A stretch of DNA of 64,000 bases from Perkinsela sp. CCAP 1560/9 (GCA_965644495.1 CBFFSA010000001.1:3968001-4032000), one strand, 5' to 3'; shown: positions 5,734 to 63,187, counted from the first letter of the stretch. The notes: generated from the letters alone by a model not told the origin. A program made the numbers and translations.

Positions 5734-6460
5734 TTTCCTTTTTTAGCCTCTTCGTTAAACGAGGTGGTTTTCAACTTAGAAGTCATTCATGCTGCGCGCT
5801 TCGCGTTGAAAACTACCACCGCGTTTAACGAAGAGCCTAAAAAAGAAAAATTGGTAAAGGATCATGAATAATCTATTTTTTGAGGTGAAAAAGCTGGATT
5901 TTTCGGCAAAAATTGCGAAATTTTACACCAAATTTGGGCCGTTTTTGATGCCTTACCAGTAGGGGCAGGAGTCAAATCTGACGAAAAAAAAGTCGTAGAA
6001 TGGTAGCTGAAGTCCCAAACTCTCCAAATAGGGTTTGGAAGTCGATTTCGGAAAAATAATATTTTTACTTTTTTCCGGGTCAAAAAACGTTTTTTTGTCA
6101 TCCCAAAAATTTCGGAATTTTCAACCTTGTCGGACCCCTCCAGCGCGTACCAGGGGGGGGTACCCCCAGGTGGGGGGGTGGAAAGTCATCGCCGCGGCCT
6201 ACTCTACAACTTCCCTGCGCTCGATTTCGAAAATCAAGATTTTGAAAATTCAAAAAACGACGTATGCCCCCCCCCTGGACCCCCCCCTCCATGGATCCCC
6301 CATTTTTTGCAAAAACAAAATTTCAGTTTTGGACCACCGGAGCCCCCTTTTATATTTTTTTCTTCTATTATATTACTGTGTTTCTCTTTATATTTTCACT
6401 GTTTTTATTCACTTTTTTTTAATAATCGAGGGTAGAGAAGAAGTTATACTACCACAGCAA
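5734..6460. mobile_element. Hairpin-ended A^T element, subfamily B, degenerate copy
   Basis: Long terminal palindrome (TTCGTTAAAC..GTTTAACGAAGAG), CCCCTGGA tract and decayed right end (..CACAGCAA); collinear with 62465-63187. Confidence 0.8.
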
Positions 6461-13823: not shown

Positions 13824-15058
13824 CAGGGGGGACATTTGTCTGTGTAATACTAATCTGGAGAACATTAATCTGTGTGCTATTAATCTGTGTTAATTCGAAA
13901 ATATTTGGCCGGACGGAAATCTGTGTTAAAAAAACAAAAATGCGCCGCAGGCGAAATTTTTCTTATTTTAGTACATTTTTACGTCTTTTTCTCTGAAATT
14001 TTCCTTTTTCTTTGCAAAACTGGACAATTTTTTGAAAAAATATCATAGCTCCGGCATACCGAGGGGACATTTATCTGTGTAACATTAATCTGTGTAACAT
14101 TAACTTTTTTAGGCTCTTCGTTAAACGCGGTGGTTGTTTTCAACTTAGAAGTCACTCATGCTGCGCGCTTCGCGTTGAAAATTACCGCTGCGTTTAACGA
14201 AGAGCCTAAAAAAGAAAATTTAGCCTGGAAAACGGAAAGATTATAGCCAAAAATAGCCGAATTTCGGGTAAAAATGGGGTGATTTTCGCGTATTTTTGCT
14301 CTCAGAGCACTAAATCCGACATTTGCGCGTGGGAAATCACTCGTAGTCATGAATGGAAGCCTACCGAACGTATTGGATAGAGAATGCGACTCCAACCATA
14401 CCATTCTTTCGGCACAAAAATGCCCCTTTAGGTCCGAAAAATACTTTTTCACCTTTTTCAGTCAAAAATGGGTCATTTTGAGGGCCGTACCACGGTTTGA
14501 AGAAGTGATACCTTGCGAAAACAACTGCGTAGAAAGCTAGTGTAGGTCCCAAACTATCAAAATACAATAGGGGAAACGATTTTGGAAAAATATTTTTTGT
14601 GCCATTTTTTTCGCCAAGTTGAATTTTTTTTCAAAACATTTTTTCCGAAAAAATCCGAACTTGGCGGACCCGTCCTGCGGATACGCGGGGGGGTCACCTC
14701 CGGGTAGGGGGGTGGAAAATGCGCGCCAAGACCCCGGCTACCCTTTCTGCGTTTTTTTTTCGAAAACTAATTTTTTCGAAAAAATTTGCTCGACCATGAC
14801 CCCCCCCCCTGGACCCCCCCCATGGACCCCCCCCATGGACCCCCATTTTTTTCAATTTTGTTTTTCAGTTTTGGACCACCGGAGCCCCCTTTTATATTTT
14901 TTTCTTCTATTATATTACTGTGTTCCTCTTTATATTTTCACTGTTTTTGTTCACTGTTTTTTCAATAATCGAGGGTAGAGCGGTAGTTTTACAACCACCG
15001 CAATCTGTGTTAATTTTACGAATTAACACAGATTAATGTTAGACAAATGTCCCCCCTG
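13824..15058. mobile_element. MITE (CAGGGGGGACATTTGTCT TIR) hosting a hairpin element
   Basis: CAGGGGGGACATTTGTCT ... AGACAAATGTCCCCCCTG|TA with ATTAATCTGTGT subterminal repeats. Confidence 0.8.
14104..15003. mobile_element. Hairpin-ended A^T element, subfamily A
   Basis: Splits the host repeat CATTAA^TCTGTGTT with no extra host bases; palindromic end with about 41-nt arm; fixed end GCGGTAGTTTTACAACCACCGCAA. Confidence 0.92.
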
Positions 15059-16143: not shown

Positions 16144-16459
16144 GAGGGGTATCCCCAGGGGGGGGGGCGGAAAATTATCGCCGCGGCCTACTCTAGCACT
16201 TCCCTGCGTTCGATTTCGAAAAGCAAAAAATTCGAAAAAACAATCTTGACGTATGCCCCCTGGACCCCCCCCCATGGACCCCCCCCTAGACCCCCCATTT
16301 TTTTCAATTTGTTTTTTCATTTTTGGACCACCGGAGCCCCCTTTTATATTTTTTTCTTCTATTATAACTTATTACTGTGTTTCTCTTTTTTTTTCACTGT
16401 TTTTGTTCACTTTTTTTGCAATAATCGAAGGTAGAGCGGTAGTTATACAACCACCGCAA
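16144..16459. mobile_element. Truncated hairpin element (subfamily B, fixed end only)
   Basis: Matches about 62870-63187; ends ..CAACCACCGCAA followed by T. Confidence 0.85.
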
Positions 16460-26996: not shown

Positions 26997-27953
26997 ATGT
27001 CACCTCTTCCCCTTCCATTCCACCTCCGTACCCTTACCTCCAGTACTATCACAACCCCCCTTGCGTCGTTTTTTCACCCCTTCTCACTTCCTTACCCAAT
27101 CCCCTTCTCTCCTCTCGGCTTCCCCTCTCCCCGATCCGATATCATAATCCCCGCCCCATGGTCCTTCCCGAGTCGTCTCCCTTCCCGTTCTCCCCCAACC
27201 CCCACAATCACAACAACCCCTCTACTTCCTCCCCACTCGACCTCCATGCTCTCACGACCACAACACCCAACTCATCTACACCCCCACACCCCCTCCCCTT
27301 CCCCCTCCCCCACCCCCACCCCCCTCTACACCACCAGTCCCTACTTTCAAAAATCCTTTTTCTCTTTTTTATTTCTCTCCACACTCTCCTTCATGGTTTG
27401 GCTACGTAACCAATCCATTGCCTCCTGCTCTGTAGGAGACCCCAACGAGACCCTTCCCAACGGGTCACCTTTACAAAACAACAGTTGTTGTAATCCCCAC
27501 AACTCGTGTAACGGATCACCACGCCTTAAGTATTGTGACACCCCCGAGGAGGTCGAATCCGTGATCCGCTCACGTGACCCGAGGCGACCCCCTTGGCCGG
27601 TGCTTCACCACAGGGCCACACAGATGCGTGAGGGGAAGCTCCCTCTCACGGGGGTGCAGGAGCTGTGGGAGGCCACCGCCTACTACTACCCCGCGGACTG
27701 GCTGATTCCGCTGGAGTTGGCCCAGGTGTTAAAGTACACCACGGGGCGGTACCTGAAACGAGTGGTACGGGACCCCGAGGGGTTCCGACGGGAGCTGATG
27801 GTCCAGCTGATTCAAATCAAGCATGGACGGGTGAGAGGGGTGGACCGGGTGAGTGGGGAGTTGTGGGAGATTTTGAGTGGAGCGATTGAGGAGTTAAGTC
27901 GGATGGATTTTCGGGATATGGAGGAGATACCGATTGCACCGACCCATCGGTAG
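26997..27953 (+). CDS. Hypothetical protein with one predicted TM segment and a globular C-terminal domain
   Basis: 318-aa ORF; Pro/Ser/Thr-rich N-terminus, FFSFLFLSTLSFMVWL hydrophobic segment, ordinary-composition C-terminal half. Confidence 0.75.
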   Translation: MSPLPLPFHLRTLTSSTITTPLASFFHPFSLPYPIPFSPLGFPSPRSDIIIPAPWSFPSRLPSRSPPTPTITTTPLLPPHSTSMLSRPQHPTHLHPHTPSPSPSPTPTPLYTTSPYFQKSFFSFLFLSTLSFMVWLRNQSIASCSVGDPNETLPNGSPLQNNSCCNPHNSCNGSPRLKYCDTPEEVESVIRSRDPRRPPWPVLHHRATQMREGKLPLTGVQELWEATAYYYPADWLIPLELAQVLKYTTGRYLKRVVRDPEGFRRELMVQLIQIKHGRVRGVDRVSGELWEILSGAIEELSRMDFRDMEEIPIAPTHR

Positions 27954-28766: not shown

Positions 28767-31060
28767 ATGTCAGATACTGACGGAGTTCCGACCACAGTTC
28801 ACTCTGTGCGTGGACCTCTGACCACTTGGCTTCGGAAGCTCCCTCCCCAACCGCAAGTAGGGGAGCGCACATCCCTTATTATTAACAACACCCCGACGGT
28901 AACAGTTCAGGAAAAACGGCAGCGTACTGAACTTACTATATTCGAGAAACGAGAAATTTGTATGCAAAGAATCGAGAAAGCTCTACCATTTACACTGAAA
29001 TGACACGTCTAACTTATTCTCTGAGCGGGATTTACATCGATGTAATTCGTTCTGGGTGGGTTACTGACGATGTCTATGAGCGAATGTTAAAGAAATATTT
29101 ACCCTATACTCTTGACAACCCCTCGACGGTTATTATCACGGACGATTTCTTTTTTAGGCTCTTCGTTAAACGCGGTGGTTGCTTTCAACTTAGAAGTCAC
29201 TCATGCTGCGCGCTTCGCGTTGAAAACTACCGCCGCGTTTAGCGAAGAGCCTAAAAAAGAAAATTTAGCCTGGAAAACGGAAAGATTATAGCCAAAAATA
29301 GCCGAATTTCGGGTAAAAATGGGGTCATTTTCGCATATTTTTGCTCTCAGAGCACTAAATCCGACATTTGCGCGTGGGAAATCACTCGTAGGTATGAATG
29401 GAAGCCTACCGAACGTATTGGGTGGAGAATGCGACTCCAACCATACCATTCTTTCGACACAAAAATGCCCCTTTAGGTCCGAAAAATACTTTTTCACCTT
29501 TTTTAGTCAAAAATGGGTCATTTTGGGGGGCGCACCACGGTTAGAAGAAGGGATACCTTGCGAAAGCAACTGCGTAGAAAGCTAGTGTAGGTCCCAAACT
29601 ATCAAAATACAATAGGGGAAACGATTTTGGAAAAATATTTTTTTTGTCATTTTTTTCGCCAAGTTGAATTTTTTTTCAAAAAATTTTCTCCGAAAAAATC
29701 CGAACTTGGCGGACCCGTCCTGCGGATACGCGGGGGGGTTACCCCCGGGTAGGGGGGTGGAAAATGCGCGCCAAGACCCCGGCTACCCTTTCTGCAGTTT
29801 TTTTTCGAAAACTAATTTTTTCGAAAAAATTTGATCGACCATGCCCCCCCCCCCCTGGACCCCCCCCCCTGGACCCCCCCCCTGGACCCCCCCCCTGGAC
29901 CCCCCCCATGGACCCCCCATTTTTTTCAAATTTTTTTTTCAGTTTTGGACCACCGGAGCCCCCTTTTATAAGTCTTTCCGTTTTCCAGGCTAAAGTTTCT
30001 TTTTTAGGCTCTTCGTTAAACGCGGTGGTTGCTTTCAACTTAGAAGTCACTCATGCTGCGCGCTTCGCGTTGAAAACTACCGCCGCGTTTAAGGAAGAGC
30101 CTAAAAAAGAAACTTTAGCCTGGAAAACGGAAAGACTATAGCCAAAAATAGCCGAATTTCGGGTACAAATGGGGTCATTTTCGCATATTTTTGCTCTCAG
30201 AGCACTAAATCCGACATTTGCGCGTGGGAAATCATTCGCAGGCATGAATGAAAGCCTACCGAACGTATTGGGTAGAGAATGCGACTCCAACCATACCATT
30301 CTTTCGACACAAAAATGCCCCTTTAGGTCCGAAAAATACTTTTTCACCTTTTTTAGTCAAAAATGGGTCATTTTGGGGGGCGCACCACAGTTCGAAGAAG
30401 TGATACCTTGCGAAAACAACTGCGGAGAAAGCTAGTGTAGGTCCCAAACTATCAAAATACAATAGGGGAAACCATTTTGGAAAAATAATTTTTTTTGTCA
30501 TTTTTTTCGCCAAGTTGAATTTTTTTTCAAAAATTTTTTTCCGAAAAAATCCGAACTTGGCGGACCCGTCCTGCGGATACGCGGGGGGGTCACCCCCGGG
30601 TAGGGGGGTGGAAAATGCGCGCCAAGACCCCGGCTACCCTTTCTGCAGTTTTTTTTCGAAAACTAATTTTTTCGAAAAAATTTGATCGACCATGCCCCCC
30701 CCCCCCTGGACCCCCCCCCTGGACCCCCCCCCCTGGACCCCCCCCATGGACCCCCCCCATGGACCCCCCATTTTTTTCAAATTTTTTTTTCAGTTTTGGA
30801 CCACCGGAGCCCCCTTTTATATTTTTTTCTTCTATTATATTACTGTGTTCCTCTTTATATTTTCACTGTTTTTGTTCACTTTTTTTTCAATAATCGAGTG
30901 TAGAGCGGTAGTTTTACAACCACCGCAATTTTTTTCTTCTATTATATTACTGTGTTCCTCTTTATATTTTCACTGTTTTTGTTCACTTTTTTTTCAATAA
31001 TCGAGTGTAGAGCGGTAGTTTTACAACCACCGCAATTATACCGCTCATAGAACGAATAAT
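28767..31060 (+). pseudogene. Pogo/Tigger-like transposase remnant, internally deleted and interrupted
   Basis: KRQRTELTIFEKREIC (CENP-B/psq HTH start); SGWVTDDVYERML..VIITDD rejoins in frame to YTAHRT when 29146-31035 is removed. Confidence 0.75.
29146..31035. mobile_element. Hairpin-ended A^T element (subfamily A) with a second copy nested at 29971-30928
   Basis: Outer target GACGA^TTATACC, inner target TTTTATA^TTTTTTTC; no TSD in either. Confidence 0.93.
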
Positions 31061-36069: not shown

Positions 36070-36968
36070 TTGCGGTGGTTGTAAAACTACCGCTCTACAC
36101 TCGATTATTGAAAAAAAAGTGAACAAAAACAGTGAAAATATAAAGAGGAACACAGTAATATAATAGAAGAAAAAAATATAAAAGGGGGCTCCGGTGGTCC
36201 AAAACTGAAAATTTTTTTTGAAAAAAATGGGGGGTCCATGGGGGGGGTCCAGGGGGGGGGTCCAGGGGGGGGGGCATGGTCGAGCAAATTTTTTCGAAAA
36301 AATTAGTTTTCGAAAAAAAACCGCAGAAAGGGTAGCCGGGGTCTTGGCGCGCATTTTCCACCCCCCTACCCGGGGGTGACCCCCCCGCGTATCCGCAGGA
36401 CGGGTCCGCCAAGTTCGGAATTTTTCGGAAAAAATTTTTTGAAAAAAATTTCAACTTGGCGAAAAAAATGACAAAAAAAATATTTTTCCAAAATCGTTTC
36501 CCCTATTGTATTTTGATAGTTTGGGACCTACACTAGCTTTCTACGCAGTTGTTTTCGCAAGGTATCACTTCTTCGAACTGTGGTGCGCCCCTCAAAATGA
36601 CCCATTTTTGACTAAAAAAGGTGAAAAAGTATTTTTCGGACCTAAAGGGGCATTTTTGTGTCGAAAGAATGGTATGGTTGGAGTCGCATTCTCTACCCAA
36701 TACGTTCGGTAGGCTTTCATTCATGCCTGCGAGTGATTTCCCACGCGCAAATGTCGGATTTAGTGCTCTGAGAGCAAAAATATGCGAAAATGACCCCATT
36801 TTTACCCGAAATTCGGCTATTTTTGGCTATAATCTTTCCGTTTTCCAGGCTAAATTTTCTTTTTTAGGCTCTTCGTTAAACGCGGCTGTAGTTTTCAACG
36901 CGAAGCGCGCAGCATGAGTGACTTCTAAGTTGAAAGCAACCACCGCGTTTAACGAAGAGCCTAAAAAA
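36070..36968. mobile_element. Hairpin-ended A^T element, subfamily A, opposite orientation
   Basis: A|TTGCGGTGGTTG ... GAGCCTAAAAAA|T; reverse complement of 14104-15003. Confidence 0.93.
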
Positions 36969-37700: not shown

Positions 37701-37812
37701 TGGATGGTACAGGATGTCACGAAATGGCACAGGATAGCACCGAATGGCACAGGATGGCACAGGATGGCACAGGATACAGTAAAAGTCACATGATGGCACA
37801 GGATACAGTAAA
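37701..37812 (+). repeat. 10-bp ATGGCACAGG tandem repeats
   Basis: Visible; related array at 35939-35976. Confidence 0.8.
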
Positions 37813-38302
37813 AGTATTTTTCGGACCCCAAGGGGCCTTTTTGCGTCGAAAGAATGGTGTGGTTGGAGCCGTATTCTCTACCCAATACGTTTGGTAGGCT
37901 TTCTTTCCTGCCTACGAGTGATTTCCCACACGAAAATGTCGGATTTAGTGCTCTGAGAGCTAAAATACGCAAAACTGGCCCTATTTTTACCTAAAAATCG
38001 GCTATTTTTGGCTATAATCTTTCCGTTTTCTTCAGGTTTCCTGGCCAAATTTTCTTTTTTAGGCTCTTCTTTTTTTTCTTTCCACGATTTTCTAGGGAAT
38101 ATTCAGACATAGAGATGATAATTCGAAGATCGTAATTTCTTTTTTAGGCTCTTCGTTAAACGCGGTGGTAGTTTTCAACGAGAAGCGCGCAGCATGAGTG
38201 ACTTCTAAGTTGAAAACAACCACCGCGTTTAACGAAGAGCCTAAAAAAGAAATTACGATCTTCGAATTATCATCTCTATGTCTGAATATTCCCTAGAAAA
38301 TC
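37812..38302. mobile_element. Hairpin-element fragment followed by a 217-bp palindrome (38086-38302)
   Basis: Diverged internal fragment, then the family hairpin with 50 extra perfectly inverted bases on each side. Confidence 0.85.
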
Positions 38303-38832
38303 CTGGGCCGATAAGCAAGTACATCATTCGAAGCCCCCCTTTGCAAGTCGTATGAATTCTTTTCCAGTCTCAGCAACGGTACCCCATTCCACTGAAGGCA
38401 AACGAGACAACGCTAGGATAGGGGGAGAGTACTATTAGGTATAAAGAGGAAGTGCAGAAGCTGTATGGAACTTTTTTGGCCTTTCCCATTTTTGGTTCTC
38501 AAATGGAGTTGCACGTTGACATGGCCATTCAGAGACGCATTCTCATTTTTAAAATAGCTTTCTCATTTTTCCTAGTTGCACGTTGACAGCCCAATTCTCA
38601 TTTTTAGTGATTCTCAGAATTGTGACTTTTACTGTAACTGTATAGTGTTCAATGGACCATCGACGAGTTTAAACCCTCTTTTACTCATGGGTGCATTGAT
38701 TTTCTGTCCAATCAGACCACGAGCTCAGCCATACCCGTCCGCCCAACTATTCTCGCTCCCTCCGACTATCAACCCGTCCCCCATTTCTTGCACCTCCTGA
38801 TCCGGAAGATTAAATCTATTTCTAAAGTGTTA

Positions 38833-55002: not shown

Positions 55003-55894
55003 ATTTTCTTTTTTAGGCTCTTCGTTAAACGCGGTGGTTGCTTTCAACTTAGAAGTCACTCATGCTGCGCGCTTCGCGTTGAAAACTACCGCCGCGTTTA
55101 ACGAAGAGCCTAAAAAAGAAAATTTAGCCTGGAAAACGGAAAGATTATAGCCAAAAATAGCCGAATTTCGGGTACAAATGGGGTCATTTTCGCATATTTT
55201 TGCTCTCAGAGAACTAAATCCGACATTTGCGCGTGGGAAATCACTCGCAGGCATGAATGAAAGCCTACCGAACGTATTGGGTAGAGAATGCGACTCCAAC
55301 CATACCATTCTTTCGACACAAAAATGCCCCTTTAGGTCCGAAAAATACTTTTTCACCTTTTTTAGTCAAAAATGGGTCATTTTGGGGGGCGCACCACATT
55401 TCGAAGAAGTGATACCTTGCGAAAACAACTGCGGAGAAAGCTAGTGTAGGTCCCAAACTATCAAAATACAACAGGGGAAACGATTTTGGAAAAATATTTT
55501 TTTTGTCATTTTTTTCGCCAAGTTGAAATTTTTTTCAAAATTTTTTTTCCGAAAAAATCCGAAATTGGCGGACCCGTCCTGCGGATACGCGGGGGGGTCA
55601 CCCCCGGGTAGGGGGGTGGAAAATGCGCGCCAAGACCCCGGCTACCCTTTCTGCGGTTTTTTTTCGAAAAGTAATTTTTTCGAAAAAATTTGCTCGACCA
55701 TGCCCCCCCCCCCTGGCCCCCCCCATGGACCCCCCATTTTTTTCAAAATTTTTTTTCAGTTTTGGACCACCGGAGCCCCCTTTTATATTTTTTTCTTCTA
55801 TTATATTACTGTGTTCCTCTTTATATTTTCACTGTTTTTGTTCACTTTTTTTTCAATAATCGAGTGTAGAGCGGTAGTTTTACAACCACCGCAA
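55003..55894. mobile_element. Hairpin-ended A^T element, subfamily A
   Basis: Full copy ending ..CCACCGCAA|T; left boundary uncertain by 1 nt. Confidence 0.92.
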
Positions 55895-56214: not shown

Positions 56215-59016
56215 CAGGGGTCCGAATAACTATAAAACTTTATTATAGGTACTTTAAAGTAACTATATTTATTTTTCCCTACCTTTATCTACCTTTATTT
56301 TTTTGTCAATGATTTACGCTGTAATCGTACTATTTTTGTGAAATTTTTCAATGCCTAGACCCTCAGATAGCAACCCAGAAAGTCGCGCTGAATTTGTTGA
56401 GTCTCACTATAAGGAGGTGGAGGCTGGAAAGCGGGTATATGAATGTCAACTCTGCAATGCACCGGACAAGCGGAAATTTTTTTGCGAAAAAGGTATTCGC
56501 ACGTCATACTCTTCTGCCCTGAGCCATATAGAAAAGATTCATGAAAAAACATTCGAAGCATGGCTGCAGGAGAAGCGAGCCAGAAAGCGCGAGACGGAAA
56601 ATACTGTTGACAGCTTGATGTCAAGTCCAATAAAGCTTTCGAAGGTGTTCGAAAAGATGATCAAATGGAAGTGTGATCATGGAGTGTCGAACGCGGCCAT
56701 TCAGGATCCACTTTTCAAATGGTTGATGAACGTGGGTTCGTCCTTTGTACCTTGTGATAAAACAATAAACAGTTTCACGCTCCAAGTAAAAGACAACTGC
56801 CGTGCTGAAATGAGCGCTCTCCTTCGTAATAAATTTGTAACAATTGCTGCAGACACTGGTACTTCCCATGGTCGAACAACGTGTTCAGTATGCGTTCTGA
56901 GTTCTGGAAATGCCACAAGCTGGAGTCTGGCGGTAGTGGAAAACTTGGAAGCAGAAACGTTCAGACAACTGTTCAACAATGTAATCGTTGAGCTTAAGAA
57001 ATATCAAGTTAAAGTGGCTCACATCGTTACTGATGCCTTTTCCGCGATAAAGAAGGGCGCTCGCGAATCTGCTAAAGAATACAACGCGTCATACAGTGTG
57101 TGCTCTGTACATTCTTTGCAATTATGTATGGAATCAATTTTTAAAATAGAGAACAAAGAGCGCATAATAAGCATTGCACAGGATTGTCCCGGGTGGAAGG
57201 CACCCTGCATGACTCGCTGGTGGTCTACGTTAATTGAAGTAGAGAAGGTTTTGAAATGTGCATCATGGGAAGAGCACGCCAAAAAGGGTGAGCTGAAGGA
57301 ATGGTTGGACCTTTTCAAGCCTTACCGCGCAATTGGTCGCATTATGGAGCGTGACCATTGTTCAGTTGCTTCAGGACTCCGCATGTGGCTAGCAGTTCAA
57401 AGTCAGGCTAAGCCATCCCACCGACTCATTTTATATGACCGCTTGATTCGTGTTTTGCGGGTAGAGCACGTGATTATAGGAATACTATCTCCGCTGATAG
57501 AGTGGTCGTCAATGCACATTCGAAATATCCGAAACCTACGGGGGATTTGTCTCCCCCTTTTGTGCTCATTGTCAGGCGACGTAAGCGGCAACTCCGAATA
57601 CAAAGTGATCGATGAGGTGAATAAATGGTGTTGTGGTGATCATCAAAACGATGAAGTAGAAACTATCCGTCTATATAACGACAAAAGCTCTTTTCAATCA
57701 TTTTGGTCGGATCTTGTGACCCGACATACGTTTCCCCTTCTGTCACACGTTGCTCGAAAATTGTCGGTCGCAGTTACTTCTGAAGCAGCCTGCGAGCGCA
57801 TATTTAGCTCAGTAGGCTTTGTGCACTCCGATCTTCGCTCAAGACTGAAGCCTGAACTTGAGGCTGAAACTGCCATTCGATGTCATGAAAAGCAACCTGT
57901 AGACGTCACAAATTGTGATGTGAGCAATTCTTCTACTATTTCTGAGGAACAGCCAGCTTCTATTGACAATTGTCGCTTTGAAGACTTTATCAGTCACGAT
58001 ATGCTATCTACGAACGAGTTGCTTCTTGTAGAGTCACTCTTTGACGCTGGAGACCTCTGCGGAAGAATTCAAAATAAAACAAACCGATACCGAGTTGTGC
58101 ACCGAAATACGAGATACTATCATCCCAAGATGGGGACGTGTGAAATTAACGGTATTAAACAAATAAAGTGCAAAAGCTCGACTGCTGAGATGGCGCGTGA
58201 AATTGTGCTGGATGTGGCAGCAATTCACTCGGACTTTCGTCTAGAAAGTGCGCAGTAAAAAGAACGAGCCGTGGCAGAGCCTTCTTTGGTAAAAAACTAC
58301 GTAACCTGAGATTTTGAGTCTGTGCGTATTTTCTTTCGTTTTATTTTTAGCTTCTGACATTGTTGCATTCTGACTTTCGCCTAGAAAGCGAACAGTAAAA
58401 TGAGCGAGCTGTGCGCAGAGCCTTCTTTGATAAAAATATTGCAACCTGAGATGTTGCGTTTCAATAAATTTCGTCATTCATCCATACAACAAGAGGTAAA
58501 CGTATAAACTATTTATACCTGTTTTTAACCTTATCGTGAGCAAATAAATGTATCTTTGCTTATGGTAAAATGCTGTTGTTTTAGATGACCAGTCAATAAT
58601 AATAAATTTCTTACTCTTCCTTTTGATAACATTGACTAATCTCTTCTTACACCTTCTCATTACTTTTGATGCGCATGGCTTGTCAACGATGATTAGAGCA
58701 GGCCTGGAACGCCTGAAGTGTTTTCCACATCTGATGCTGATGAAACTTGATCGTCATGTTCTGCCTGAAAACTATAGCTCTGCAAGATTTTTTCTATATA
58801 TATTTTAGGTAAGCAGAAAAACCATTCCCTCCAACAAGGCATACTCTCCCCGATCCGAGCACCCAGATTGCACAGATTTCCCACCGAAATTTCACAAAAA
58901 GTCGACCTCTAAAAATATAGGTACATAAAGCTTTAAAGGTACTATAGGTACTTTATAGTAACTATATTTATTTTTTCTACCTATATATAAACTATATAAA
59001 GTTATTCGGACCCCTG
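56215..59016 (+). mobile_element. Full-length hAT DNA transposon
   Basis: Perfect 17-bp TIR CAGGGGTCCGAATAACT; 8-bp TSD TTTTGTAC at 56207-56214 and 59017-59024; subterminal TAGGTAC/TAACTATA repeats. Confidence 0.96.
56351..58258 (+). CDS. hAT transposase, uninterrupted
   Basis: BED finger (CQLC..HIEKIH), AADTGT, VTDAF, CSVH, TRWWS, SEAACERIFS dimerisation motif. Confidence 0.94.
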   Translation: MPRPSDSNPESRAEFVESHYKEVEAGKRVYECQLCNAPDKRKFFCEKGIRTSYSSALSHIEKIHEKTFEAWLQEKRARKRETENTVDSLMSSPIKLSKVFEKMIKWKCDHGVSNAAIQDPLFKWLMNVGSSFVPCDKTINSFTLQVKDNCRAEMSALLRNKFVTIAADTGTSHGRTTCSVCVLSSGNATSWSLAVVENLEAETFRQLFNNVIVELKKYQVKVAHIVTDAFSAIKKGARESAKEYNASYSVCSVHSLQLCMESIFKIENKERIISIAQDCPGWKAPCMTRWWSTLIEVEKVLKCASWEEHAKKGELKEWLDLFKPYRAIGRIMERDHCSVASGLRMWLAVQSQAKPSHRLILYDRLIRVLRVEHVIIGILSPLIEWSSMHIRNIRNLRGICLPLLCSLSGDVSGNSEYKVIDEVNKWCCGDHQNDEVETIRLYNDKSSFQSFWSDLVTRHTFPLLSHVARKLSVAVTSEAACERIFSSVGFVHSDLRSRLKPELEAETAIRCHEKQPVDVTNCDVSNSSTISEEQPASIDNCRFEDFISHDMLSTNELLLVESLFDAGDLCGRIQNKTNRYRVVHRNTRYYHPKMGTCEINGIKQIKCKSSTAEMAREIVLDVAAIHSDFRLESAQ

Positions 59017-62464: not shown

Positions 62465-63187
62465 TTTCTTTTTTAGGCTCTTCGTTAAACGCGGTGGTCG
62501 TTTTCAACCTAGAAGTCACTCATGCTGCGCTCTTCGCGTAGAAAACTACCACCGCGTTTAACGAAGAGCCTAAAAAAGAAAAATCGCGAAAAGATCATGA
62601 CTAATCTTTTTTTGGGGGAAAAAACCCGATTTTTCGGCGAAAAATGCGAAAATTTGGCCCAAATTTAAGCCGTTTTTGATGCCTTACCAGTAGAGTCAGG
62701 AGGCGAATCTGACGAAACAAACGTCGTAGAATGGTAGCTGGGGTCCCAAACTCCTAAAACACGTTTTAGGAGTCGATTTTGGAAAAATAATATTTTTACT
62801 TTTTTTTGGGTCAATTTTTTTTGGGGGTCACCCCAAAAATTTCGGAAATTTTGACCTTCCTCCTGCGCGTACCAGGGGATGGGGTACCCCCATGGGGGGG
62901 GGGGGGGGGGGGAATTATCGCCGCGGCCTACTCTACCACTTCCCTGCGCTCGATTTCGAAAAACAAAAAATTCGAAAAAAAGAAATCGCGACGTATGCCC
63001 CCCCCCTGGACCCCCCCCATGGACCCCCCATTTTTTTCAATTTTGTTTTTCAGTTTTGGTCCACCGGAGCCCCCTTTTATATTTTTTTCTTCTATTATAT
63101 TACTGTGTTCCTCTTTATATTTTCACTGTTTTTGTTCACTTTTTTTCTATAATCGAGGGTAGAGCGGTAGTTATACAACCACTGCAA
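62465..63187. mobile_element. Hairpin-ended A^T element, subfamily B
   Basis: A|TTTCTTTTTTAGG ... CAACCACTGCAA|T; same ends as subfamily A but a different middle. Confidence 0.9.

Follow-up and report, generated by a model that had tools for sequence, protein, structure and literature searches.

The repeat at 14104-15003 raises the question of what kind of mobile element would insert between A and T without duplicating its target, begin at the same base in copy after copy and end at many different ones. We analysed this 900-base sequence in its window, which is the whole stretch of 64,000 nucleotides, and in the 21-Mb genome (an assembly of 110 contigs) to which the window belongs. Ends are named 5' and 3' throughout according to the direction of the transposase gene described below.

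Copies, ends and insertion sites

The observation of the repeat family was confirmed. BLAST of 14104-15003 against the window recovered seven full copies plus fragments, in two subfamilies, just as the earlier note had described them. The boundaries of the copies come from BLAST together with inspection of the ends. The copy at 14104-15003 is a full non-autonomous copy of 900 bp on the minus strand, and both of its junctions are fixed by an exact paralogous empty site. Further full copies on the minus strand are found at ∼55003-55894 (outer arm 45-47 nt, with 2 nt of uncertainty at the left boundary, as the flank starts with T), at 62465-63187 (a subfamily copy with an outer arm of 44 nt) and at ∼5734-6460 (a diverged subfamily copy of ∼720 bp), and one with an outer arm of 40 nt lies on the plus strand at 36070-36968. 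Another minus-strand copy, with a 44-nt outer arm and three exact paralogous empty sites, is split into 29146-29978 and its 5' part at 30929-31035 by a nested copy of the same strand at 29979-30928, whose outer arm (29979-30047) measures 69 nt. The fragments comprise the 5' 200 bp only of a copy (16256-16459, minus strand) and a copy body on the plus strand (37810-38069) that ends within its inner arm and is followed by T-rich filler. The BLAST match of this second fragment spans 37810-38252 and so runs into a palindrome with 98-nt arms at 38082-38306 (plus strand), in which a normal hairpin with 44-nt arms has ∼50 nt of non-family sequence on one side and the same sequence inverted on the other. 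No Rfam family matched the window at gathering thresholds.

Beyond the window the family is abundant. A 29-nt motif of the fixed 5' end has 487 matches genome-wide and its reversed control none, which puts the copy number of the 5' end at ∼490. The loop motif of the 3' hairpin occurs at 73 places within the ∼340 kb of genome sequence that we read directly, and our table of junctions covers ∼140 of the ∼490 copies, partly taken from match listings.

One end is nearly constant. It reads ...GCGGTAGTTTTACAACCACCGCAA on the plus strand of the 14104 copy and in all copies inspected, and among 59 distinct copies compared the terminus is near-invariant, so the essentially invariant end with a small hairpin that had been proposed is borne out. 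In the direction of the element this 5' end consists of TT followed by GCGGTGGTT-GTAA-AACTACCGC, a hairpin of 9 bp. In the 14104 copy it occupies 14980-15003 on the minus strand, where the 5' terminal inverted repeat GCGGTGGTTG follows the TT and pairs with AACTACCGC. The other end is the outer arm of a long hairpin with a 29-nt loop. In the same copy the inner, body-side arm lies at 14174-14214, the conserved loop at 14145-14173 and the outer arm, 41 nt long with its end fixed by the empty site, at 14104-14144, all on the minus strand. GCGGTGGTTG is placed 2 nt from the 5' end; its exact complement CAACCACCGC is found at outer-arm positions 9-18, 15-27 nt from the 3' end (in the 14104 copy as plus-strand GCGGTGGTTG at 14127-14136), and the two therefore form an asymmetric pair of terminal inverted repeats. 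As single-stranded DNA both ends fold far better than shuffled sequences: the 5' hairpin at -8 kcal/mol (z -4.5), the 3' hairpin of the 14104 copy at -39 kcal/mol (z -8.3) and that of the 69-nt-arm copy at 29979-30928 at -58.7 kcal/mol (z -14.3).

The element inserts between A and T without target duplication, as exact paralogous empty sites prove. The base at -1 of the 5' end is A in 57 of the 59 distinct copies, and the base at -2 is mostly T. Of 39 clearly truncated 3' ends among the matches listed, ∼37 have T at +1. Three empty sites had been rebuilt in the earlier note from the window, and all three stand. The site of the 29146 copy, ATTATCACGGACGA^TTATACCGCTCATAG, occurs exactly three times elsewhere in the genome, and that of the 14104 copy, CTGTGTAACATTAA^TCTGTGTTAATTTTAC, has one exact match and one with 2 mismatches; the third belongs to an insertion nested within another family copy, where the family sequence itself gives the site. 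Two insertions into family copies, at AAAAAAA^TATAAAAGG and at AAAAAAATA^TAAAAGG, are exact to the base. Neither the exact empty sites nor the nested insertions showed duplicated or lost target bases. The register is ambiguous by one T, since TTGCGG...N inserted at A^T and TGCGG...NT inserted at AT^N are equally allowed by the sequence; the shifted register gives AT^N and still not T^T. At the 29146 copy, removal of the insertion had been said to restore a pogo reading frame. A frame of 262 codons is indeed restored across the junction, but the pogo label is not borne out: a Pfam search with both halves of this host frame matched no family.

A 12.9-kb partner encoding a Rep-helicase

The earlier note had taken the repeat for a non-autonomous rolling-circle element read from 5'-TTGCGG, on the strand opposite to the one on which 14104-15003 is numbered, and had suggested looking for long copies with the same ends that encode a Rep-helicase. 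Such a long copy exists. Helitron_like_N matches are found at 17 places in the genome, and the surroundings of two of them, on contigs 8 and 4, have 12.9 kb in common at 99.76% identity with unrelated flanks beyond. The similarity begins exactly after an A with TTGCGGTGGTTGTAAAACTACCGC..., which starts TTGCGG, and ends exactly with ...GAAGAGCCTAAAA before a T; its 3' junction thus ends ...GAGCCTAAAA followed by T. The 12.9-kb element contains one open frame of 2,975 codons in which Pfam recognises DUF6570 (44.5 bits, cut-off 24.3), Helitron_like_N (75.8 bits) and PIF1 (88.9 bits). The frame carries the motifs HFH, YLIKYMSK with two tyrosines and GGPGTGKS. In a PDB search its best solved relatives were Pif1-type helicases, and Helraiser (7lcc) was also matched. 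An AP-endonuclease domain (Exo_endo_phos) was not found by Pfam in either part of this RepHel frame. Downstream of the RepHel gene lies a frame of 268 codons with an RRM domain. The direction of the RepHel gene sets the orientation of the element, which therefore runs from 5'-TTGCGG... to the 3' hairpin, on the minus strand for the 14104 copy, as the earlier note had it.

With both ends in common with this partner, the 900-base repeat is probably a non-autonomous element that arose by deletion from a Helitron-like one (HLE2/Helitron2 type) and is moved in trans by the RepHel of its 12.9-kb relative. The long element opens with 1.7 kb made up of two incomplete copies of the short family, both of which reach the loop and have no outer arm.

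Variation at the 3' end and its possible sources

A palindromic end with a 29-nt loop and an outer arm that stops variably had already been described from the window, and we find the same on a larger scale. Copies in the window have outer arms of 40, 41, 44, 44, 45-47, 69 and 98 nt, and in all sequence examined the palindrome reaches 36, 37, 38, 39, 40, 41, 43, 44, ∼45, 56, 69, 74 or 98 nt, arms of ∼45 nt measuring 46-49 there on account of flanks that start with T. The outer arm can stop anywhere from 33/34 to ∼48 nt, rarely at 51-98 nt, and T is nearly always the next base. For 40 further copies the coordinates of forward and reverse matches gave arms of at most 41 nt (5 copies), 43 (1), 44 (8), 46-49 (∼23), 51 and 52 nt. 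A pattern anchored in the outer arm, for which 100 of 395 arm tails were viewed, showed clear ends at 33/34 and at each position from 36 to 44 in ∼39 cases, with ∼27 tails extending to 45 or more. These tallies were taken from match coordinates and from the arm-tail listing and were counted by eye, while arm lengths of 41, 44, 45 and 69 are fixed to the base by empty sites. When 35 copy bodies were placed on a tree (median pairwise identity 97.4%), sisters often turned out to have arms of different length (44/45, 44/40, 44/39, 69/45), but the tree is star-like and cannot tell whether arms ever lengthen within a lineage. Both of the two youngest autonomous copies have an outer arm of 38 nt, and older ends of the autonomous type measure at least 45.

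A few copies carry arms that are templated. Two rare inner variants, absent from the nearest relatives, recur in mirror image in the 69-nt arm at 29979-30047; a third private change of this copy, within the first 41 nt, is unmirrored. A copy from another subfamily has a 74-nt arm that pairs perfectly, core included; it mirrors four subfamily-specific changes and has its loop inverted, and its flanks are still A and T. Two flop copies, from two other subfamilies, have the whole hairpin inverted, with two variants at positions 38-44 mirrored in one of the two. Such cases are rare. For the main family we counted genome-wide 151 hairpins in the normal arrangement against 1-2 flops and two arms of at least 65 nt. 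Other copies show the opposite, namely one 56-nt arm with three mismatches to the inner sequence of the same copy and two copies in which changes of the inner arm, at positions 36 and 41, have no mirror in the outer arm. In normal copies the core arms differ at three fixed positions, the body-side arm reading GCGGCGGTAGTTTTCAAC where the complement of the outer arm reads GCGGTGGTTGCTTTCAAC; hence the core is inherited and not resynthesised at each event.

A derivative without an inner arm allows the signal to be separated from the fold. It is found at two loci, 99.2% identical with different flanks, both copies ending at GAGCCTAA with the same 36-nt outer arm, and it cannot form the long hairpin. 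As this derivative has still moved, it is the outer arm with its inverted repeat, and not the fold, that is essential as the 3' signal. An essential outer arm also fits the internal arm-less loops of the autonomous element, which do not act as ends.

How might such a ragged end be made? We propose that an HUH/two-tyrosine Rep would nick 5' of T both at the left end (A^TTGCGG) and at the target (A^T), and that one strand would be transferred without target duplication and with an exact 5' joint. The 3' joint might then take any available 3'-OH, so that copies would stop at varying points in the outer arm's A/T-rich foot (33/34 to ∼48 nt). The likeliest source of this spread would be imprecise cutting or exonuclease trimming of a frayed stem end. 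Cutting or trimming would account for the accumulation of ends at 45-48, for the fact that parent-child-like pairs share their ends (at 38 and 36 nt) and for the changes that lack a mirror. In a smaller share of events a 3' end that has folded back might be extended on the element's own inner arm and body; occasional extension of this kind would explain the arms of 51-74 nt. Possibly the hairpin is also recopied or inverted now and then. How cleavage, trimming or extension, and strand transfer follow one another is an inference.

It might be possible that none of the hairpin variation beyond truncation has to do with transposition, but that it arose after insertion from the instability of palindromes, by template switching during replication or by fold-back repair of breaks. 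The palindrome at 38082-38306, which duplicates ∼50 nt of non-family flank beside a broken copy with T-rich filler, looks like just such a fold-back repair of a break; in a second case of flank copying a flanking tandem-repeat unit is mirrored, and flops and long arms are rare, with ∼1-2 each per 150 main-family copies, as this explanation would have it. It does not account well for the 69-nt and 74-nt arms, which are bounded, at their full extended length, by the usual A...T flanks, nor for the insertion site of the 69-nt copy in another copy, which is intact to the base. Normal flanks and an intact site imply that the extension predates the joining to the target. We regard instability after insertion as a possible but less probable source of the variation as a whole.

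The contrary explanation puts self-priming into every event: Rep would cut at a fixed point in the outer arm (e.g. after GAGCC, position 33), and a host polymerase would refill the arm to a variable extent on the inner arm before the end is joined to the target T. Several observations agree with this. The shortest ends lie at 33/34 and every position up to ∼48 is used (among the matches listed), there are almost no mismatches beyond position 33 as against the three fixed ones in the core, private and subfamily variants are mirrored in both arms, sister copies do not inherit arm length, and the arms of 51-74 nt could be the tail of the same process. However, ∼40% of the ends pile up at 45-48, which is what precise cutting of an inherited end predicts and not what random stops would give. 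The two youngest autonomous copies both end at exactly 38 nt, and the pair that lacks the inner arm, and with it any template, both end at exactly 36 nt. The unmirrored inner-arm changes at positions 36 and 41 and the three mismatches of the 56-nt arm with its inner sequence speak against it as well. We consider refilling at every event unlikely. The earlier note had proposed that the free end snaps back and primes itself before joining the target; this survives for the few copies in which an arm is templated on its own inner arm or body (the 69-nt arm, the perfect 74-nt arm, the mirrored subfamily variants), but the common spread of 33-48 nt is explained as well or better by cutting and trimming, and the core is inherited.

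Placement of the family and its host

The family has the properties of the Helitron-like elements: in the frame of the partner a Rep with HUH motif and two tyrosines is fused to a Pif1-family helicase, and the target is not duplicated. Within these elements HLE2 is characterised by short terminal inverted repeats, lying 0-4 nt from the end on the 5' side and subterminally on the 3' side, such as are found here, and a 5' hairpin formed by the 5' inverted repeat and the bases downstream of it is a feature of Helitron2. According to HELIANO, DUF6570 is specific to HLE2, i.e. Helitron2 and Helentron (PMC11417382). An assignment to HLE2 would thus rest on DUF6570 and the terminal structure, and the family is probably best filed as a variant of the Helitron2 type. 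Against this filing stands the target. A at -1 and T at +1 is the habit of Helitron1, whereas T^T or a T-rich target is usual for HLE2. The 3' repeat moreover sits in the outer arm of the hairpin with no separate hairpin after it, which is not the Helitron2 arrangement, and the AP-endonuclease domain that marks Helentrons is absent from the RepHel.

The earlier note did not recognise the end structure as a described one, and here our result differs. Hairpins at both ends together with a subterminal 3' copy of the repeat define Helitron2 (PMC3627910, PMC5148889), and ends of variable length are known from Helentrons (PMC4067079). The match to these described termini is nevertheless partial: the repeat pair and the 5' hairpin agree, but not the A^T target, the position of the repeat in the outer arm and the ragged end. 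What differs from described elements is the A^T target, the 3' repeat in the outer arm, the ragged 3' end, the rare templated extensions and the flipped loops.

The closest likeness is to Helitron2 as defined by Bao and Jurka, whose elements start with T and have an inverted repeat within 0-2 bp of the 5' end that folds into a hairpin there, its copy on the 3' side lying 20-30 bp from the end and upstream of a hairpin (PMC3627910). Helitron-1_CRe and its non-autonomous relative Helitron-1N1_CRe have, like the family described here, a near-terminal 5' repeat hairpin with an inverted copy near the 3' end, a 3' hairpin, a T start and a RepHel without endonuclease, and most Helitron2 families lack a target duplication (PMC3627910). 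Unlike Helitron2, the present family has its 3' repeat inside the outer arm of a very long terminal hairpin (stem of 41-45 bp, loop of 29 nt), its target is A^T and not TTTT^T/C, and its 3' end is ragged over ∼12 positions. In Fusarium oxysporum, FoHeli1 and FoHeli2 have a hairpin at the 5' terminus whose sequence recurs inverted within the 3' hairpin (PMC5148889). Short duplicated 5' ends, tandem or nested self-insertions and a preferred site with A before the junction region (TNAT) are further points of resemblance (PMC5148889). However, the 3' repeat of FoHeli lies 38-51 bp from a fixed ATATTTT end in which the authors saw no variation (PMC5148889), while here the end varies and has no fixed motif. 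In mites and mosquitoes, Helentrons have subterminal repeats that are palindromic, a palindrome at the 3' end and T in varying number at the termini (PMC4067079). With Helentrons and their non-autonomous HINE/DINE-1 elements the family has in common the subterminal inverted repeats 2-4 nt from the 5' end, which are sometimes palindromic, the 3' palindrome, the lack of target duplication, many short derivatives and a variable number of terminal bases (PMC4067079). Helentrons differ in having an AP-endonuclease and inserting at TT (PMC4067079), where our family has no such domain and inserts at A^T, and here it is a templated hairpin arm that is cut or extended and not a run of T. The terminal hairpins of parvoviruses and AAV, which serve rolling-hairpin replication, are similar in behaviour only, as they combine a self-priming terminal hairpin and flip/flop loops with an HUH Rep. 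In the family studied here flop is rare (∼1%), core mismatches are inherited, the long hairpin is found at one end and the element is a chromosomal transposon; we found no evidence of kinship with parvoviruses or AAV.

A canonical Helitron1/HLE1 family whose ends have degenerated would share the A^T target without duplication and a RepHel without endonuclease domain, and Helitron1 elements such as Helraiser also have an HUH/two-tyrosine Rep with a Pif1-like helicase and a 3' hairpin in the end signal. We rejected this explanation as very improbable. The ends read TTGCGG... and ...GAGCCTAAAA(AAGAAAA), without the 5' TC and the 3' CTRR whose absence had been pointed out from the window; the stem extends right to the 3' end, where a Helitron1 hairpin would stop 10-12 nt short of it; there are a 5' hairpin and terminal inverted repeats as well; and the frame contains DUF6570, which is HLE2-specific (PMC11417382). 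A foldback/MITE-type cut-and-paste element or a SINE-like retroposon with a 3' hairpin, to which a short, non-coding, abundant repeat with a large palindrome might be likened, has next to no chance of being correct and was rejected, since the outermost ends lack inverted repeats, the target is not duplicated, there is neither a poly(A) tail nor a pattern of 5' truncation, and both ends are common to the RepHel-coding element.

The genome looks kinetoplastid-like. In the window the long open frames all lie on one strand, and one of them has a MIX domain, a Pfam family described from kinetoplastids. A survey of 57 trypanosomatid genomes reported no DNA transposons, and only Merlin is cited, in Bodo saltans and Perkinsela (PMC12278014). 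A full-text literature search found no paper reporting Helitrons in kinetoplastids. An abundant and recently active Helitron family would thus widen the range of transposons known in this group.

Recognition and finishing of the 3' end is the least understood step of Helitron-like transposition, and it underlies gene capture. The family described here is young, with hundreds of copies, an intact partner and junctions at single-base resolution. Its 5' joint is exact, its 3' joint seems to take whatever 3'-OH lies in the A/T-rich foot of the hairpin or past it, and what it needs at the 3' end is the outer arm and not the fold. It is conceivable, although we would not expect it, that the 3' end is made on the folded-back hairpin by host enzymes (by trimming, self-primed fill-in and occasional flip/flop hairpin transfer) and not by sequence-specific cleavage by Rep, and that this is at the same time the first description of an active Helitron family from a protist of the kinetoplastid type. 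If true, a 3' end made by the host would amount to a step resembling a rolling hairpin inside eukaryotic rolling-circle transposition. With this family, termination becomes testable.

Copies lacking the inner hairpin arm

In two copies of the family located elsewhere in the genome (regions L012 and L020) the inner, body-side arm of the 3' hairpin is gone, removed by an identical deletion between GTTTTC repeats in both. These copies are 99.2% identical, occupy separate loci and share the common end GAGCCTAA. Folding of the long hairpin is impossible in an element of this type, yet the element has moved. Variation is also seen inside the element, where a C-rich minisatellite built of CCCCCCC(T/A)TGGA units (window 14795-14845 and 29880-29950) changes in unit count from copy to copy.

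Composite ends and palindromes

Short duplications of the 5' end recur in five further genomic regions (L026, L027, C51, C60 and C10): TTGCGG...CTCGA(TTA) is followed by TTGCGG again, at a spacing of 35-38 nt. Among these regions there are also head-to-tail arrays, in which neighbouring copies meet either at a direct joint, GAAAA|TTGCGG, or with 1-5 nt between them. Both the duplicated 5' ends and the arrays resemble composites of FoHeli, the Helitron2-like elements FoHeli1 and FoHeli2 of Fusarium oxysporum, and Helitron tandem insertions. A possible mini-element is found in another region (L030, ~2800-2990), where a complete hairpin is preceded, at a distance of just 45 nt, by the 5'-end-like sequence TTGCGGTGGTTGT; the first base beyond this hairpin is not T. 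Within the window, a palindrome with 98-nt arms (38082-38306) consists of a normal hairpin bracketed by ~50 nt of non-family flank that is duplicated in inverted orientation. It adjoins a truncated copy and T-rich filler, and looks like a product of fold-back repair.

Content of the autonomous element

In the N-terminal part of the RepHel frame (L041:7435-8606, contig 8) a unit of ~267 bp (89 codons) is repeated in tandem, detected as staggered self-matches when copies were compared with each other. An RRM domain is encoded by a frame of 268 codons (L047:5838-6641, contig 8) that lies downstream of RepHel, within the boundaries of the autonomous element, and is possibly captured cargo.

Host element and neighbouring genes

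The 14104 copy splits a small palindromic element (window 14040-14103 and 15004-15055; GGGGACATTTATCTGTGTAACATTAATCTGTG ... CACAGATTAATGTTAGACAAATGTCCCC), of which a genome sequence search found an uninterrupted paralogue on contig 11. This host resembles a MITE or a foldback element. Across the whole window the long open frames are almost all on the plus strand, and a 318-codon frame (26997-27953) encodes a MIX domain (PF18529, E 2e-41); the domain and the one-strand bias are consistent with a kinetoplastid-like genome whose genes lie in polycistronic arrays. Finally, a frame of 635 codons (window 56351-58258) encodes a hAT dimerisation domain (PF05699) and represents a further DNA-transposon family in a lineage from which few have been reported.
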